Source of the DNA: Heteronotia binoei
Taxonomy: Eukaryota
Direction of reading: 5' to 3'
DNA length: 64,000 nt
Assembly (NCBI RefSeq): GCF_032191835.1
Contig: NC_083242.1
Location: 38,626,001-38,690,000, forward strand
Shown: positions 1,482 to 45,607 of the stretch, piece after piece
Layout: every line of letters starts with the position of its first letter
Numbering within the stretch: the first letter of the stretch is position 1
Program-made: the position numbers and the translations under genes
The notes under the pieces: generated by a model
Told to the model about the DNA's origin: nothing
The model's database searches: none
Seen by the model: only the letters and a program-made list of their open reading frames with translations

Positions 1482-3962
1482 TCAGTCCCGCCAGCGGTGT
1501 CCGCACTGGGGGCTGCAGCACTTGTAGAAGGTGGTCATGGGCTCATCAGCAGAGCGCGTCTGCAGCTGCATGAAGTAGGCCCGTGGGTGCTCGCACCTGG
1601 GGCATGGCTCTGCAGGAGAGAAGGAAACAGTCACGTCCAGTGTTCCCTCTTAGCTGAGTTAGCAGGAGCTAGCTCACAGATTTTTATTCTCCAGCTCATA
1701 CCTTTTTGTCTTAGCTCAGGAACAGGAAGACTGCAGACTTATATCCCGCCCTTCTATGAATCACTCAGAGCGGCTTACAATCTCCTTCCCCCACAACATC
1801 CCCCATGGCTCTCATGAGGATGACCCCAGAGCAGTGATCCCTCTAAGCTGAGTTAGTGTGAGCTAGCTCACAATTTTTTAGCCACCAGCACATACATTTT
1901 TGTCTCAGCTCACGAAGAAATGGCCCTAGAGCACAACAGTTTATGCAGTAGGCAAATTCCTCACTCACAACTTTAATGCCAGTAACTCACAAAGTAGAGC
2001 AGGCATGGGGAACCTTTTTTCTGCCAAGGGCCATACAGATATTTACAACATCATTCACGGGCCATAAAAAACTGTCAGCTTAAAAAACACTGCTCCCCCA
2101 AGGGAGAATGATTCAGGCCAGCAAAATTAATGCAAATAATTGTTTTTCTATTTGAAGTCGTGGGGAGAGCTAATCTGGCACGTGCACACACATCCAGCCT
2201 GCCGCCCTAGGCAAATGCATAGGTCCAAGGCTTTTTTGTAGAAAAAGTCTAGCAGGAACAGCAGCATATTAGACCGCATCCCCTAATATTAGCATATCAG
2301 GCCACACCATCTGGGATAACAAGTGCCAACTTAACTGTGACAATAACTTTTCCAGGCCCTGCAGCAATTCTGGCCAGGCAGCCAGACCCCAGGGAGGCTG
2401 CTGCACAGTACATCTGGGCCCTGTGATCCCTGCCTGGCCTGGGGAGGCTGCTGCACAGTGTGATTGGGCCCCACGATCCTCGCTGGCCAGCCAGGCACTA
2501 GGGAGGCTGCTGCACAGTACATCTGGGCCCTGTGATCCCTATCTGGCTCTGGGGAGGCTGCTGCACAGAGCAGCTGGGCCCCACGATCCTCGCTGGCCAG
2601 CCAGGCCCCAGGGAGGCTGCCGCACAGTACATCTGGGCCCTGTGATCCCTGCCTGGCCTGGGGAGGCTGCTGCAAAGCGCGGCTGGGCCCCACGATCCTT
2701 GCTGGCCAGCCAGGCCCCAGGGAGGCTGCTGCACAGTACATCTGGGCCCCGTGATCCCTGCCTGGCCTGGGGAGGCTGCTGCACAGTGTGATTGGGCCCC
2801 ACGATCCTCGCTGGCCAGCCAGGCCCTAGGGAGGCTGCTGCACAGTACATCCGGGCCCCGTGACCCCTGCCTGGCCTGGGGAGGCTGCTGCACAGTGTGA
2901 TTGGGCCCCACGATCCTCGCTGGCCAGCCAGGCCCTAGGGAGGCTGCTGCACAGTACATCCGGGCCCCGTGATCCCTGCCTGGCCTGGGGAGGCTGCTGC
3001 ACAGTGTGATTGGGCCCCACGATCCTCGCTGGCCAGCCAGGCCCCAGGGAGGCTGCTGCACAGTACATCTGGGCCCCGTGATCCCTGTCTGGCCTGGGGA
3101 GGCTGCTGCACAGTACATCCGGGCCCCGTGATCCCTGCCTGGCCTGGGGAGGCTGCTGCACAGCGCGGCTGGGCCCCGTGATCCATGCCTGGCCTGGGGA
3201 GGCTGCTGCACAGTCTGATTGGGCCCCACGATTCTCGCTGGCCAGCCAGGCTCTAGGGAGGCTGCCGCACAGTACATCTGGGCCCTGCGATCCCTGCCTG
3301 GCCTGGGGAGGCTGCTGCACAGTACATCTGGGCCCTGCGATCCCTGCCTGGCCTGGGGAGGCTGCTGCACAGTGTGATTGGGCCCCACGATCCTCGCTGG
3401 CCAGCCAGGCCCCAGGGAGGCTACTGCACAGTACATCTGGGCCCTGTGATCCCTGCCTGGCCTGGGGAGGCTGCTGCAAAGCGCGGCTGGGCCCCACGAT
3501 CCTTGCTGGCCAGCCAGGCCCCAGGGAGGCTGCTGCACAGTACATCTGGGCCCCGTGATCCCTATCTGGCTCTGGGGAGGCTGCTGCACAGTACATCCGG
3601 GCCCCGTGATCCCTGCCTGGCCTGGGGAGGCTGCTGGTTCCGCCCAGCAATCCTGCCCTCGGACGGAGCTTCCCCTCCCGCCCTCTGACCTGCGGTGGAG
3701 TCCACGTTCTCCCAGGCGGCGGCGCCCCCCAGCACGTCGTCGACCTCCTTGAGCTTCGGGTAGCGCCTGCCGGTCACCTGCAAGGGGGGGGGGGGAGAGG
3801 GGTCAGTGGGGGCGGGGCCACGCAGTCCCTCCCGGGCGGGGCCACGCCCACCTTGCGCGTGACGTTGCGGACGTAGGGGCACGTGGTGCAGGCGAAGCGG
3901 TGGCATCGCGCGCCCTCCTCGGCCACCAGCACGTTCCCGCAGGCCGGGCAGAAGAGCAGCAT
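1482..3962 (-). CDS. POLR3K: RNA polymerase III subunit RPC10/C11, 108 aa
   Basis: Exons 3962-3852, 3777-3690, 1609-1482 (327 nt). MLLFCPACGN...VDSTAEPCPRCEHPRAYFMQLQTRSADEPMTTFYKCCSPQCGHRWRD*, with two Zn ribbons and the TFIIS-like QTRSADEP motif. Confidence 0.97.
1637..2000. mobile_element. Two partial MITE copies (CAGTGTTCCCTCTAAGCTG-type TIR) with a short SINE fragment between them (about 1723-1800)
   Basis: Termini at about 1638 and 1832 match the TIR of the complete elements at 29513-29664 and 33572-33765. The stretch 1723-1800 matches the SINE tail seen at 44348 and 52137. Confidence 0.55.
2392..3635. repeat. Tandem array of alternating 50/59-bp monomers (109-bp dimer) in POLR3K intron 2
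   Basis: GGGAGGCTGCTGCACAG recurs at 2392, 2442, 2501, 2552, 2611, 2661, 2720...3625; about 23 monomers. Confidence 0.95.
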
Positions 3963-4480
3963 GGCGGCGGCGGAGGAGGAGGAGGAGGAGCTGGCGCACG
4001 CCGAGGCGGTGGGGCTCTGGCAGGCCGGGCTGGCGCGCCTCGTCCGCGACCCGCTCCTCTGCGACCTGCCCGCCCAGGCAAGCGAGACGCCAGGGAGCGG
4101 AAGGGGCGGGGCGGGCGGCCATCCCTGGGCCAATCAGGGGCTCCTGCGCCACTTCCGCTTCCTCTCCCCGCTCAGGTGACCCCGGAAGAGATCGCCTCGC
4201 AGGTGGCGCTCGAGTACGGCCAGGCCATGACGGTGCGCGTGCGCAGAGCGGACGCCCCCCAGGAGCCCATGCGTGAGTGGCCGGCGCTGAGCATGCGCAG
4301 AGGGAGGGAGGGCGGGCCGGGGGCGTGGCGGCCGCGCTGAGACTCCTCCTCTCCTCTCCCCTCCCGTGCAGCGGTGGTGGTCGTGCAGCAGGCGACGGTG
4401 CTGGACCTGAAGAAGGCCGTGCAGCGGTTTGTGCAGCTCCGGCAGGAGAGGCAGGGCGGCGTCCGGCACCTCAGCTGGTG
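3690..4480. promoter_or_regulatory. CpG island, bidirectional POLR3K/SNRNP25 promoter
   Basis: Dense CpG; GC boxes at about 3809-3849 and 4102-4115; CCAAT 4130-4134; ETS-type ACTTCCG 4151-4157. Confidence 0.8.
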
Positions 4481-4785
4481 AGGACCCCCCCCCGAAGGGA
4501 GAGGGCCGGGTGCCAACCTCCAGGCGGGGCCGGGAGCCACCCCTCCCCCTAGGCTGACCCTCCCTCCCTCCCCCCCCCGCAGGAGGCACGTGTGGCGGAC
4601 CTACAGCCTGGCCTTTGGCAGCGAGAAGCTGGACGAGGACCACAAGAAGCTGCGGGAGTGAGTGGGGGGTACTTCTGGGGGGCGGGGTGGCTGTCTGGGC
4701 CCTGGCTGACGCCCGCTGTGCCACTTGCAGATACGGCATCCGGAACAGGGACGAGGTCAGCTTCGTGAAGAAACTCCGCAAGTGA
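3961..4785 (+). CDS. SNRNP25: U11/U12 snRNP 25 kDa protein, 149 aa
   Basis: Exons 3961-4077 (GC donor), 4176-4272, 4372-4477, 4583-4657, 4731-4785 (450 nt, phases consistent). DPLLCDLPAQVTPEEIASQVALEYGQAMTVRV...ATVLDLKKAV...YGIRNRDEVSFVKKLRK*. AATAAA at 5468-5473. The start codon is inferred. Confidence 0.93.
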
Positions 4786-6113
4786 GACCCGCCAGGTGAG
4801 ACCATTGACCCCCCCACCCCACCCCCTTGTCCTCTGCAGACTGTACTGGCTGGGGGGGCCAGGGCTGCCCGGGGGGCTCTTCTCCAGAGGGTGGCCCTTT
4901 CCTTCCACCTGATGTTGGGGGGGACCTTCCTCAGAAGAAGGCCCACCCCCCCCCCCAGTGCTGGGTTGCCTTCTGGCAGTTACAGAAAGTGTGAGGTTAC
5001 CTCCTTTGAGGCTCTCAGTGATGTCCTGCAGACTGTCTGTGTTGGGGGCAAAGGGATCCAACCAGTGGCACAAGAGTTTCCGCCAATATAAATCTCTCCT
5101 GCTACCTCAACAAGCCTCTCTTTGTTTCTCTACAGGTGCCAGGACACACTGGGAGCAGGGCTTAAGTATTCCCCTGCTCTACCCAGGGGCAGCTTTAAAT
5201 GGCATCCGTTCCTCACATTTCCTCTTTGAGCCCTGGGGATATTGCGAGGAAGGAAGACAGCCACCCTGGCGGCTGCTCAGCACAGAATCATTTGGGCGGC
5301 AGTCACAGCTGCAGGCCAGCAGCAGCAGAGTGATGGCTCTGGGAGAAATGAGGGCCCCCCCTCAGCTGCCACACAGGTCCATTTTTTGACAGCTCTTCCT
5401 GCCTGGAGGCTGGGAAGTGGCTGCTGCTGCACCAGCTGGACACACAAGCTGGTATTTCCATTTCATCAATAAAGCAGCAGCACAAGGGAAGTGCGCGTGT
5501 GTGGTGTTATCAGGTATTTGGGTTGGGAGCGTTTGGAGGAGAAGCTGTGGTGCTAGCAGCAGAATCCAGTCTGCAGTGAAGACCTCAAACATTTTGAAAG
5601 AGACAGGCAGTTGATGCTATAGCCCACCAAAAAGGCTCTTCCCAGCCCCAAACTCTGAAAATGCATTTCCAGCAGCAGGAGAAACGCTCTCACACCAAGC
5701 CATGTAGGCACAGTTTCCAAATCAAGTACACCTTACATTTAAAAATCTAGTTGTTATAATTAACTGACCTTTGTTTAGAACTTGGGGCTGTCTAGTGCTG
5801 GATTAAGGAGAGGTGTGCACACCTAAATTGGGACTTGTTTGTCAACAATGCGAACCAGCACAGAAACAGCATAGAAGTTTTAGAAATGTAGCTAAAACGC
5901 TACCTGTAATGTTTTAATTACCACCTGGGCAACACATTAAATCTTGTTAAAAAGGCCATTTGGAAACTAGCACAATAAAAACGGAAGGTTCAGAAAAAGG
6001 TCCTGCAAAATCGAACAAGGCACAGATGTCTTTCTGTATGCAGCACACAGTCCAGTCTTGACAGCTAAGGCAGCTTGGGAGGGGGGCTGGGAAGGGCCTT
6101 CTGCGGCAAAGGC

Positions 6114-25703: not shown

Positions 25704-27072
25704 ATGGCGGGGCCGGGGCTGGAGGCGGGGGACCCGCGGGGGCGGCTGCGGCTGGGCGGCGACTTCTTCGGGCGGCCCTGCGTCGGCCTGGCCAAGGCCC
25801 TCCTGGGGCAGGCAAGCCCTCCCCTTGCAGCCTCTCCCCCGCCCGGCCCTTGCATGGGGCAGGCTTCCTGGGGTGGGGGGCAGGCAGAGGCAGCCATGAT
25901 GCAGGCCCCCCTGCCCCCCCCGCTCTCCTCCTCCCGGTGCTGGCCTTCCCTAGGGGGTGGGGGGCAGGCAGGCCGGCCTGCAGGGGGGGAGCAGAGGCAG
26001 CCATGATGCAGGCCCCCCTGCCCCCCCCAGCTCACCCTCCCCCCCCGCTCTCCTCCGCCAGGTGTAGCCCCTCTGGGGGTGGGGGGCAGGCAGGCAGGCC
26101 TGCAGGGGGGGAGCAGAGGCAGCCATGATGCAGGCCCCCCTGCCCCCCCCCAGCTCACCCTCCCTCCGGCTCTCCTCCTCCAGGTGTAGCCCCTCTGGGG
26201 GGTGGGGGGCAGGCAGGCCTGCAGGGGGGGAGCAGAGGCAGCCATGATGCAGGCTCCCCTGGCCCCCCCCAGCCCACCCTCCCCCCCCCGCTCCCTTCCA
26301 GGTGCTGCCCCCCCAGGGGGTGGGGGGCAGGCAGGCCTGCAGGGGGGGAGCAGAGGCAGCCATGATGCAGGCTCCCCTGGCCGCCCCCCCCAGCTCACCC
26401 TCCCCCCCCCGCTCTCCTCCTCCAGGTGCTGGCCCGAAGGCTGCCAGACGGGCGGGAGCTGCGGGGGCGCATCGTGGAGACAGAGGCCTACCTGGGGGGC
26501 GAGGACACAGCCTCTCACTCACGGGGCGGGCGGCGGACAGCCCGCAACGCCGCCATGTTCATGAAGCCCGGCACCCTCTACGTCTACCAGATCTATGGCC
26601 TCTACTTCTGCCTGAACATCTCCAGCCAGGGTGAGTGGCGGGGGGGGGGGGGTCCAGAGGGGCACTGCCAGGGCGGGGGCTGACCCTGGCTTGTCTCCTG
26701 GCAGGGGAGGGGGCTGCCGTCTTGCTGCGCTCCTTGGAGCCCCTGCAGGGGCTGGAGGCCATGAGGCAGCTGCGCCTGAGCCAGCGCAAAGGGGGCCACC
26801 CTCCTGCCAAGCCCCCCAAGGACTGGCAGCTGTGCAACGGGCCCTCCAAGCTGTGCCAGGCCCTCGCCATCAACAGGACCTTCGACCAGGAGGACTTGGC
26901 CAGCGCCCCGGACCTCTGGCTGGAGCCTGGCCCCGAAGCCCCCGCGGAGGCCCTGGTGTGCAGCCCCCGCATCGGCATCAGCGGCGACTGGGCCCACAAG
27001 CCCCTGCGCTTCTACCTGCGGGGCAACAAGTGCGTCAGCGTGGTGGACAAGGCGGCAGAGCAGGCCACCTGA
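25704..27072 (+). CDS. MPG: N-methylpurine DNA glycosylase (AAG), about 226 aa
   Basis: Exons 25704-25811 (GC donor), 26426-26630, 26705-27072. GDFFGRPCVGLAKALLGQ|VLARRLPDGRELRGRIVETEAYLG...MFMKPGTLYVYQIYGLYFCLNISSQG|EGAAVLLRSLEP...NGPSKLCQAL...RIGI. Catalytic ETEAY present; start codon inferred. Confidence 0.92.
25860..26425 (+). repeat. About 120-bp tandem repeat (5 copies) in MPG intron 1, each ending in a copy of the 3' splice site
   Basis: Unit ends at 25936, 26061, 26183, 26301, 26425; spacing 125/122/118/124. Confidence 0.9.

Positions 27073-28874: not shown

Positions 28875-45607
<16,733 letters not shown>

Follow-up and report, generated by a model that had tools for sequence, protein, structure and literature searches.

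Start codons of POLR3K and SNRNP25 interlock in a single CATG in Heteronotia binoei and other geckos

We examined a 64,000-nucleotide stretch of the Heteronotia binoei genome (the window, to whose positions all coordinates refer) in which POLR3K, encoding a subunit of RNA polymerase III (RPC10), and SNRNP25, encoding a minor-spliceosome protein, lie on opposite strands with their 5' ends facing each other. The window matches the public H. binoei assembly exactly (8785 nt compared, 0 mismatches). On the minus strand, POLR3K coding exon 1 (3852..3962, 37 codons) translates to MLLFCPACGNVLVAEEGARCHRFACTTCPYVRNVTRK, which holds the N-terminal zinc ribbon and matches human RPC10 residues 1-37 (E 1e-17). 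A 74-nt GT-AG intron (3778..3851) separates it from exon 2 (3690..3777), and the joint 3777^3852 was present in RNA from runs X22, X23 and X1. Exon 2 was likewise delimited by RNA joints, and a loose RNA end at 3690 reads into the coding part of exon 3 (1482..1609, stop codon 1482-1484). As marks of a POLR3K orthologue, we looked for an N-terminal Rpb9-type zinc ribbon (CxxC...CxxC) and a C-terminal TFIIS-type zinc ribbon in a protein of about 108 amino acids; the public product at this locus is 108 amino acids long and carries PF02150 and PF01096. Together with the human match, these domains bear out the identity proposed by an earlier, sequence-only reading of the window.

SNRNP25 begins on the plus strand with coding exon 1 (3961..4077, 39 codons), which translates to MAAAEEEEEELAHAEAVGLWQAGLARLVRDPLLCDLPAQ and ends in DLPAQ; residues 19-39 of this translation align to human SNRNP25 residues 3-23. 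RNA joints define exon 2 (4176..4272), which also matches the human protein, exon 3 (4372..4477) and exon 4 (4583..4657). Exon 5 (4731..4798, stop codon 4783-4785) ends at a loose RNA end at 4798 and is followed by an intron in the 3' UTR (4799-5138). That this gene is SNRNP25, as had been recognised before, is confirmed by the match of exons 1 and 2, each searched singly, to the human chain 8r7n_B. Our orthologue definition, a ubiquitin-like domain (PF18036) preceded by a DPLLCDLP segment, describes the public H. binoei protein P0001 (GCA_032191835.1), which carries PF18036, is identical to our translation over exon 1 and already begins at ATG 3961 (MAAAEEEEEELAHAE). Intron 1 (4078..4175, 98 nt) was supported by an X1 contig at depth 54 and by one X22 read. 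The only canonical placement of its joint (4077^4176) is GC..AG, making it a GC-AG intron with the donor GCAAGC; the donor is GC in Heteronotia versus GT in other geckos. We ruled out a U12-type intron, the donor being neither ATATCC nor GTATCC. The span 3778-4175, singled out by the sequence-only reading, corresponds exactly to the two first coding exons and the two first introns, both introns being confirmed by RNA.

The two genes meet in a CATG (3960..3963; c3960, a3961, t3962, g3963) that contains both start codons, POLR3K Met1 on the minus strand (3962-3960) and the SNRNP25 ATG on the plus strand (3961-3963), so that the coding sequences overlap by 2 nt. The proposal that one CATG spells an ATG for each gene holds in the sequence and in translation on both strands, and agrees with the public CDS ranges 1522-4002(-) and 4001-4825(+) in L001 (window coordinates plus 40). 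The start contexts are also as described earlier: GCCGCCGCC precedes the minus-strand ATG, and the plus strand reads agcATGg. Position 3961 is indeed the sole in-frame ATG of exon 1, with an in-frame stop upstream at 3874-3876, and alignment verified that the codon corresponding to human SNRNP25 Met1 is GTG (4009-4011). Scanning the sequence, we found no plus-strand ATG at 3186-3960, leaving ATG 3961 the first for 775 nt, and no minus-strand ATG at 3963-4119. With no competing ATG on either strand, both AUGs are the first for any nearby transcription start site.

The sequence-only reading had suggested aligning the junction across squamates and birds; we ran this comparison and found the interlock in geckos and short spacers elsewhere. 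Sphaerodactylus, Paroedura and two more gecko contigs (Logan) carry the CATG interlock as well, and public annotation gives a 2-nt overlap of the coding sequences for Heteronotia and for both of these genera. The distance from ATG to ATG is 17 nt in Pogona, 24 nt in Eublepharis, 35 nt in two passerines, 77 nt in a snake and 101 nt in a turtle. The arrangement is not unique to this locus and stands at the end of a series, found across sauropsids, of very short spacers of 17-101 nt. For a single species, the chance that the base after CAT is a G and that the resulting ATG is also in frame is roughly 1 in 10, a figure to be weighed against the recurrence of the in-frame interlock in five gecko taxa whose exon 1 lengths differ (37-43 codons). 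ATGGCGG is unchanged in the five interlocked geckos; only G3963 counts as independent evidence of conservation, since the other three bases of CATG are fixed by the POLR3K start codon.

The N-terminus of SNRNP25 was compared in the same way. An upstream in-frame ATG, a conserved acidic stretch and the motif AHAE occur in 11/11 taxa, with exon 1 varying from 36 to 62 codons, and turtle, birds and geckos share this extension as conserved protein sequence. The human protein, of which we used PDB chain sequences only, is without it. Paroedura and the gecko contigs L008 and L009 have a Met that aligns with human Met1, and exon 1 of Heteronotia and Sphaerodactylus is without a second in-frame Met. 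Annotation in three gecko genomes, the in-frame extension conserved among sauropsids and the absence of any other AUG all support the claim that SNRNP25 starts at ATG 3961; the N-terminal peptide predicted from this start is (acetyl-)AAAEEEEEELAH.

Synonymous divergence was lower in POLR3K exon 1 than in exons 2 and 3 (0.248 versus 0.415, permutation p 0.004) and lowest in codons 1-16, which adjoin the SNRNP25 ATG (0.142, with the codon cut picked after seeing the data). This may indicate extra constraint at the 5' end of POLR3K, and it can also reflect POLR3K's own needs.

The Heteronotia raw reads came from four runs (40-50 reads per run, libraries apparently unstranded), with 3954-4002 masked as repeat. 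Both genes were covered in 4/4 runs mapped, at a depth too low to correlate their expression; this coverage speaks against the two genes excluding each other at the tissue level. Both first introns and all SNRNP25 joints were seen. In run X1, POLR3K and SNRNP25 assembled as separate contigs, with unplaced ends of 20 and 28 letters and 0 differences from the flanking genome. If these ends are colinear with the genome, the POLR3K contig would end near 3973 and the SNRNP25 contig near 3975, in which case the latter would be without ATG 3961 and the covered overlap would be less than 30 nt. L008, an RNA contig from a related gecko, runs from spliced POLR3K exons 3-2-1 in antisense unbroken through CATG into spliced SNRNP25. 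For this continuity, all 31-mers over the junction must exist in RNA, which needs a transcript overlap of at least 30 nt. L008 need not be one molecule, as strand-blind assembly can join two mRNAs. Queried with P0015 residues 1-66, we found no Heteronotia RNA contig extended into antisense POLR3K, the only such records being from birds (P0021, P0023 and P0024). In a further bird record, P0022, antisense POLR3K exon 1 is spliced into SNRNP25.

A CpG island (3640..4800, GC 0.73, CpG o/e 0.73 against 0.24-0.26 in the flanks) covers the 5' halves of both genes and spans both 5' ends, as in bidirectional CpG-island promoters. The motifs named in the sequence-only reading were all located, namely GC boxes at 3809-3818, 3834-3843 (both in POLR3K intron 1) and 4104-4113, a CCAAT at 4130-4134 and the ETS-like CTTCCG at 4152-4157. 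The accompanying suggestion that each first intron houses the partner's promoter fared unevenly in the gecko alignment, as the CCAAT box in SNRNP25 intron 1 is conserved while most GC boxes of POLR3K intron 1 and the ETS-like site are not. The conserved element, GGCCAATCA (4128..4136), is a candidate NF-Y site of a shared or POLR3K promoter; GGCCAAT.A is unchanged in five geckos though the intron has otherwise diverged, and factor binding there would be expected from the motif. Among geckos, the GC boxes of POLR3K intron 1 were ruled out as conserved promoter elements save for a GC/CACCC box, GGCCACGCCCAC (3840..3851), which directly adjoins the donor of POLR3K exon 1 and lies some 110 nt upstream of ATG 3961. 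This box reads GGCCAC(A/G)CCCAC in 4/5 aligned geckos (Paroedura GGCCCCTCCCAC, Eublepharis GGTAACACCCAC), and its conservation is ambiguous given its partial overlap with the splice donor. The ETS-like site showed no conservation among the geckos aligned.

The SNRNP25 start codon lies inside CAGCATGGCGGC (3957..3968, plus strand), which resembles the TISU/YY1 element SAASATGGCGGC (PMC3177215, PMC2518114) at 11 of 12 positions; the one mismatch is at position 3, and positions 5-12 (ATGGCGGC) are exact. Read in reverse complement, the same bases form the GCCGCC Kozak context of POLR3K, and the match may be partly forced, as POLR3K codons 1-2 determine positions 1-6. We rejected the element as a stand-alone statistical signal, there being 4 matches at this stringency in the window versus 1.7 expected. 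We know of no prior description of a TISU doubling as the Kozak context of a gene on the opposite strand. A TISU/YY1 function at 3957-3968 is putative.

These observations suggest the following course of events. POLR3K and SNRNP25 are a divergent housekeeping pair in one CpG island whose 17-101 nt spacer, present in other sauropsids, was lost in the lineage of Gekkonidae and Sphaerodactylidae, bringing the two ATGs into one CATG. With both ATGs in use, the 5' UTR of either gene must run antisense to coding exon 1 of the other, as the sequence-only reading had concluded, and the mRNAs must overlap at their 5' ends. Each mRNA would then start within the partner's first coding exon, with short leaders and a complementary 5' overlap of probably tens of nucleotides. 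The near-perfect TISU/YY1 element would suit the SNRNP25 AUG to initiation from a short leader, and its opposite-strand reading would supply the Kozak context of POLR3K. In turtle, snake and birds, promoter elements occupy the space between the ATGs. In geckos they may have been displaced to the flanking introns and exons, the CCAAT box and the GC/CACCC box being candidates; the positions of start sites and promoter elements are our inference. The interlock itself is real and shared by several geckos, and it takes an otherwise ordinary divergent gene pair to its extreme. That both ATGs are genuine starts, with CATG standing in place of the lost spacer in a 5'-overlapping divergent pair within one CpG island, is in our judgement likely.

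The plus-strand ATG could instead be a by-product of the POLR3K start and its Kozak context, with SNRNP25 transcription starting downstream at about 3975 and the protein made from CUG 3991 (gagCTGg), GUG 4009 or the exon 2 AUG 4227. The apparent ends of the unmerged X1 contigs, near 3975 for SNRNP25 (depth 54) and 3973 for POLR3K, fit such a start, as does the POLR3K constraint on C, A and T of CATG regardless of SNRNP25; the Met at the human Met1 position in Paroedura, L008 and L009 also fits, a shorter protein being viable in mammals and perhaps in geckos. However, contigs assembled from RNA-seq usually fall 10-30 nt short of a transcript's 5' end and the region is masked here, L008 RNA is continuous over CATG, and Heteronotia and Sphaerodactylus offer no AUG at the human Met1 position. 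The conserved AHAE extension also speaks against a downstream start, as turtle, birds and geckos all have an in-frame ATG before it, and initiation at AUG 4227 would cut away DPLLCDLP, a conserved segment that can be aligned to the solved human chain. We regard this alternative as unlikely.

It is far less probable that an unrecognised upstream exon, in or beyond POLR3K, is spliced to SNRNP25 exon 1 and supplies another start, which would make the interlock irrelevant to translation. At 40-50 raw reads per run, joints within the masked 3954-4002 could be missed, but no joint into SNRNP25 exon 1 appeared among the RNA joints outside it, and the plus strand left of 3961 is rich in purines and shows neither a pyrimidine tract nor an obvious acceptor. 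The frame is moreover shut by the stop at 3874-3876 with no ATG between, L008 is colinear with genomic sequence over the junction, and the public gene models of three geckos begin at the CATG. An assembly or annotation artefact might be feared in a region of 75% GC with triplet repeats, which is error-prone in assemblies; given that the junction recurs in chromosome-level assemblies of three geckos and in two Logan contigs, all of them independent, and that the X1 RNA contigs fit its flanks with 0 differences, we consider this extremely improbable.

Returning to the reading in which both ATGs are used, we can extend it, tentatively and with considerable doubt, to a dual-use initiation module. 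The 12-15 nt around CATG would have been retained for roughly 100 million years, acting rightwards as a YY1/TISU element for SNRNP25 transcription and short-leader translation and leftwards as the Kozak context of POLR3K. Each core promoter would lie in the other gene's coding exon, so that a given allele could hold only one pre-initiation complex at a time. Firing would alternate, and the amounts made of a Pol III subunit and of a minor-spliceosome protein would be tied together stoichiometrically.

Use of both ATGs would oblige any translatable mRNA of the two genes to begin within its partner's coding sequence. The locus would then offer a natural and evolutionarily stable test of two Pol II core promoters superimposed on opposite strands, of translation from very short leaders (TISU-type initiation outside mammals) and of coding, Kozak and promoter constraints acting on common bases. 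The graded series of 101, 77, 35, 24 and 17 nt, followed by the interlock with its 2-nt CDS overlap, makes a ready comparative design. There is also a lesson for annotation, as gene callers that forbid overlaps cut one gene short; in L008, POLR3K was called from Val13. The pair itself is already contained in public annotation. Of 22 papers that name both genes, none of the 15 listed appears, by title and abstract, to deal with their arrangement.

The gecko locus is an extreme variant of familiar arrangements, namely overlapping divergent genes and bidirectional promoters, and introduces no new principle. Human POLR3K and SNRNP25 presumably also overlap at their 5' ends. The order GTF3C1, POLR3K, SNRNP25, RHBDF1-like was found in all squamates and the bird checked, and the two ATGs lie within about 100 nt of each other in every sauropsid examined; outside Gekkonidae and Sphaerodactylidae, however, spacers of 17-101 nt place ETS and GC boxes between the ATGs. 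TISU elements, whose positions 5-12 are essential, are bound by YY1 and permit cap-dependent, scanning-independent initiation from leaders of about 5-30 nt (median 12), the start site lying no more than about 30 nt upstream (PMC3177215, PMC2518114). Like TISU genes, SNRNP25 has a basic cellular function and its locus geometry favours a very short leader; the difference is that the element is known here from its sequence match, with leader and YY1 binding putative. The pair resembles bidirectional CpG-island pairs (PMC1487180) in joining two housekeeping genes on opposite strands, with 5' ends less than 1 kb apart, in one CpG island with GC-box, CCAAT and ETS-type motifs, and in the presence of both gecko genes in the same RNA libraries. 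In typical head-to-head pairs, 100-200 bp separate the start sites and the genes do not overlap (Li et al. 2006, PMC1487180). A closer likeness is to the 5'-overlapping subclass exemplified by INO80E/HIRIP3, where the overlap is limited to particular long isoforms and effects of RNA duplexes or R-loops have been reported (PMC11890862); the gecko transcripts would likewise be complementary at their 5' ends, here by necessity. What sets POLR3K/SNRNP25 apart from both is that, with coding sequences overlapping by 2 nt and start codons interlocked, no translatable mRNA of either gene could escape the overlap.

At 3960-3963 the sequence reads CATG, which gives an ATG on each strand: the start codon of POLR3K on the minus strand (3962-3960) and the probable start codon of SNRNP25 on the plus strand (3961-3963), an arrangement that the sequence-only reading had proposed; matches to the human proteins agree with both gene identities. 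POLR3K coding exon 1 (3962..3852, minus) contains 37 open codons (MLLFCPACGN...NVTRK) and matches residues 1-37 of the human Pol III subunit RPC10/POLR3K (E 1e-17). SNRNP25 coding exon 1 (3961..4077, plus) contains 39 codons, MAAAEEEEEELAHAEAVGLWQAGLARLVRDPLLCDLPAQ; human SNRNP25 residues 3-23 align with its residues 19-39, and the match carries on in the next exon. Homology searches were performed with single exons and public protein ids, and the human comparison used protein sequences. The alignment places GTG 4009-4011 opposite human Met1, and translation of the exon found ATG 3961 to be its sole in-frame ATG, both as initially read. Upstream of 3961, the SNRNP25 frame is shut by TAG 3874-3876, and a plus-strand scan from 3185 up to 3961 found no ATG in any frame; on the minus strand, the first further ATG rightward of 3962 is at 4122. 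A CpG island spans 3640-4800 (GC 0.73, CpG o/e 0.73; 0.24-0.26 beside it).

RNA joints confirm POLR3K intron 1 (3778-3851, 74 nt, minus, GT-AG) and SNRNP25 intron 1 (4078-4175, 98 nt, plus), and the span 3778-4175 singled out earlier is exactly these two introns and both first coding exons. POLR3K continues on the minus strand into exon 2 (3777..3690) and exon 3, with its stop at 1482-1484. Further SNRNP25 introns with RNA joints lie at 4273-4371, 4478-4582 and 4658-4730 (plus), and loose RNA ends after 4798, which match 5139 onward in all four runs, indicate a 3' UTR intron (4799-5138, 340 nt, plus) beginning 13 nt past the stop codon. The SNRNP25 intron 1 donor in Heteronotia is GC (GCAAGC), in agreement with the RNA joints; GC..AG is the sole canonical option among the placements that the joint allows. 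Paroedura, Sphaerodactylus, Eublepharis and L009 (a Logan gecko contig) have GT at the matching site, so the Heteronotia donor carries a lineage-specific T-to-C substitution, in a gene that itself encodes a minor-spliceosome component.

To compare the junction across sauropsids, we measured the nucleotides between CAT and ATG in 11 loci or contigs. The alignment bore out the interlock in five geckos: Heteronotia and Paroedura (Gekkonidae), Sphaerodactylus (Sphaerodactylidae) and two Logan gecko contigs (L008 and L009). The other sauropsids compared have spacers of 17-101 nt: 17 nt in Pogona, 24 nt in Eublepharis (Eublepharidae), 35 nt in two passerines, 77 nt in Pseudonaja and 101 nt in Emys. 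All 11 have an in-frame ATG ahead of a segment that is acidic or rich in alanine and varies in length, then a conserved (L/M)AHAE motif and DPLLCDLP segment, which points to a translated N-terminal extension absent from the human protein. The length of SNRNP25 exon 1 ranges between 36 and 62 codons with the frame preserved throughout, though its indels lie partly in triplet repeats that are in-frame by nature. In Heteronotia and Sphaerodactylus, the only AUG able to start the extension is that of CATG. Since C, A and T are dictated by the POLR3K Met codon, independent conservation is confined to G3963 and the GCGG after it, unchanged across the five-gecko alignment. We consider it quite likely that ATG 3961 is used as the SNRNP25 start.

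If both ATGs are used, the SNRNP25 mRNA must begin at or left of 3960, within POLR3K coding sequence, and the POLR3K mRNA at or right of 3963, within SNRNP25 coding sequence; a 5' overlap of the two mRNAs then follows by logic, while direct evidence is limited. L008 (1061 nt) leads from antisense spliced POLR3K exons 3-2-1 across CATG to SNRNP25 exon 1, which is joined by splicing to exon 2 and beyond. As a k=31 assembly, it requires every junction 31-mer in RNA and thus a combined overlap of at least 30 nt, its continuity being that of k-mers and not proof of a single molecule. In a bird contig (P0021), too, spliced SNRNP25 is continuous with POLR3K exon 1 in antisense. Run X1, labelled Heteronotia, has the two genes on unmerged contigs, with 20 letters past 3953 for POLR3K and 28 past 4003 for SNRNP25; RNA mapping masked 3954-4002, so these letters are placed by length only. 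If colinear with the genome, the contigs end near 3973 and 3975, respectively, and the SNRNP25 contig lacks the ATG, which fits SNRNP25 transcription starting downstream of ATG 3961. RNA-seq assemblies often miss the final 10-30 nt of a 5' end, and the X1 ends are therefore also compatible with very short leaders upstream of both ATGs. The raw-read runs contributed 40-50 reads each, without strand signal. The same RNA libraries contain reads of both genes, giving no sign of mutually exclusive expression.

Use of both ATGs with short leaders would suit the plus-strand context CAGCATGGCGGC (3957-3968), which matches the YY1-linked short-leader initiation element TISU (SAASATGGCGGC) at 11/12 positions and exactly at positions 5-12, those required for YY1 binding, transcription and translation (PMC2518114, PMC3177215). 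The median leader length of TISU genes is 12 nt, and leaders down to 5 nt still allow cap-dependent initiation at the element (PMC2518114, PMC3177215). Read on the opposite strand, the bases at 3957-3968 supply the GCCGCC Kozak context of POLR3K; the same candidate bases could thus give both genes short leaders and limit antisense overlap to tens of nt. The match alone is weak evidence, because the window contains four such hits where 1.7 are expected, and POLR3K codons 1-2 account for positions 1-6. Elsewhere in the window are a perfect match, GAACATGGCGGC (26549-26560, minus), and a one-mismatch match, GAAGATGGCGGG (43075-43086, plus), both of which may mark translation starts of further housekeeping genes in the cluster.

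Among six squamates, POLR3K synonymous divergence is 0.248 for exon 1, below the 0.415 of exons 2+3 (permutation p 0.004), with a minimum of 0.142 in codons 1-16 (p 0.0014, post hoc cut), the 48 nt directly upstream of the SNRNP25 ATG. The proposal that each promoter lies in the partner's first intron held in part: five geckos share an unchanged GGCCAAT.A box (4128-4136) within an otherwise diverged SNRNP25 intron 1, and among geckos neither the GC boxes of POLR3K intron 1 nor the separate ETS-like site is conserved. The low exon 1 divergence and invariant box would fit a regulatory role for each partner's sequence. The interval between the two ATGs holds ETS and GC boxes in turtle, snake and birds.

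Eublepharidae diverge before the Sphaerodactylidae/Gekkonidae split. On this tree, the interlock would have a single origin, with a ~20-nt spacer lost or replaced, and would have persisted from that split onward, for some 100 million years, with free divergence of the adjoining SNRNP25 codons 2-14. One base change cannot make the interlock in Eublepharis because the frames differ.

Several observations concern the rest of POLR3K. A GC-rich 1.26 kb minisatellite (2379-3636; 109-nt unit, ~9-11 copies, 89% matches) occupies much of intron 2, has a CpG o/e of only 0.26 and yields long spurious ORFs on both strands. At 1596-1598, within the CPxC zinc-ribbon motif of exon 3, the assembly has AGG (Arg) and the loose-end consensus AAG (Lys) in four of four RNA runs, with CPKC in all other compared species; the mismatch at base 1597 reflects either polymorphism in the individual sequenced or an error in the assembly. 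At 3906, the assembly has T and reads have C (9/9 in RNA run X22, 2/2 in X23), a synonymous change (CGA to CGG, Arg19). The upstream neighbour GTF3C1, a TFIIIC subunit gene on the plus strand, has its stop at 1398-1400 and AATAAA at 1416. The closest minus-strand poly(A) signals for POLR3K (1160/1164) lie beyond that stop, so its 3' UTR should be antisense to the last GTF3C1 coding exon. Stop-to-stop gaps of 61-82 nt occur in four other squamates. POLR3K is tightly packed at its 3' end too, two Pol III-related genes lying tail to tail.

Record CM063344.1 of the Heteronotia binoei assembly GCA_032191835.1 is identical to the window with an offset of 40 (0 mismatches in 8785 nt). Its coding ranges (POLR3K, 108 aa, 1522-4002, minus; SNRNP25, 4001-4825, plus; record coordinates) and the public Heteronotia SNRNP25 protein (P0001, 149 aa), which begins MAAAEEEEEELAHAE, make the interlock already implicit in public annotation. 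A non-exhaustive literature search on the gene pair found no paper remarking on it, and as far as we found it is undescribed. A public bird protein, the Thryothorus ludovicianus 'SNR25 protein, partial' (P0022), holds VVQAKRWQRGPSSATSTFPQAGQKSSIAA, an antisense translation of POLR3K exon 1, inserted past DLPPQ, which looks like an annotation error from the tight head-to-head layout; in L008, an overlap-averse gene caller began POLR3K at Val13.

POLR3K and SNRNP25 belong with head-to-head pairs on bidirectional CpG-island promoters, probably in the 5'-overlapping subclass (PMC1487180; INO80E/HIRIP3, PMC11890862). Usual head-to-head pairs have non-overlapping start sites spaced 100-200 bp apart (PMC1487180). 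The difference from these is one of degree: POLR3K and SNRNP25 share 2 nt of coding sequence, and use of both ATGs would make overlap obligatory for every functional mRNA.
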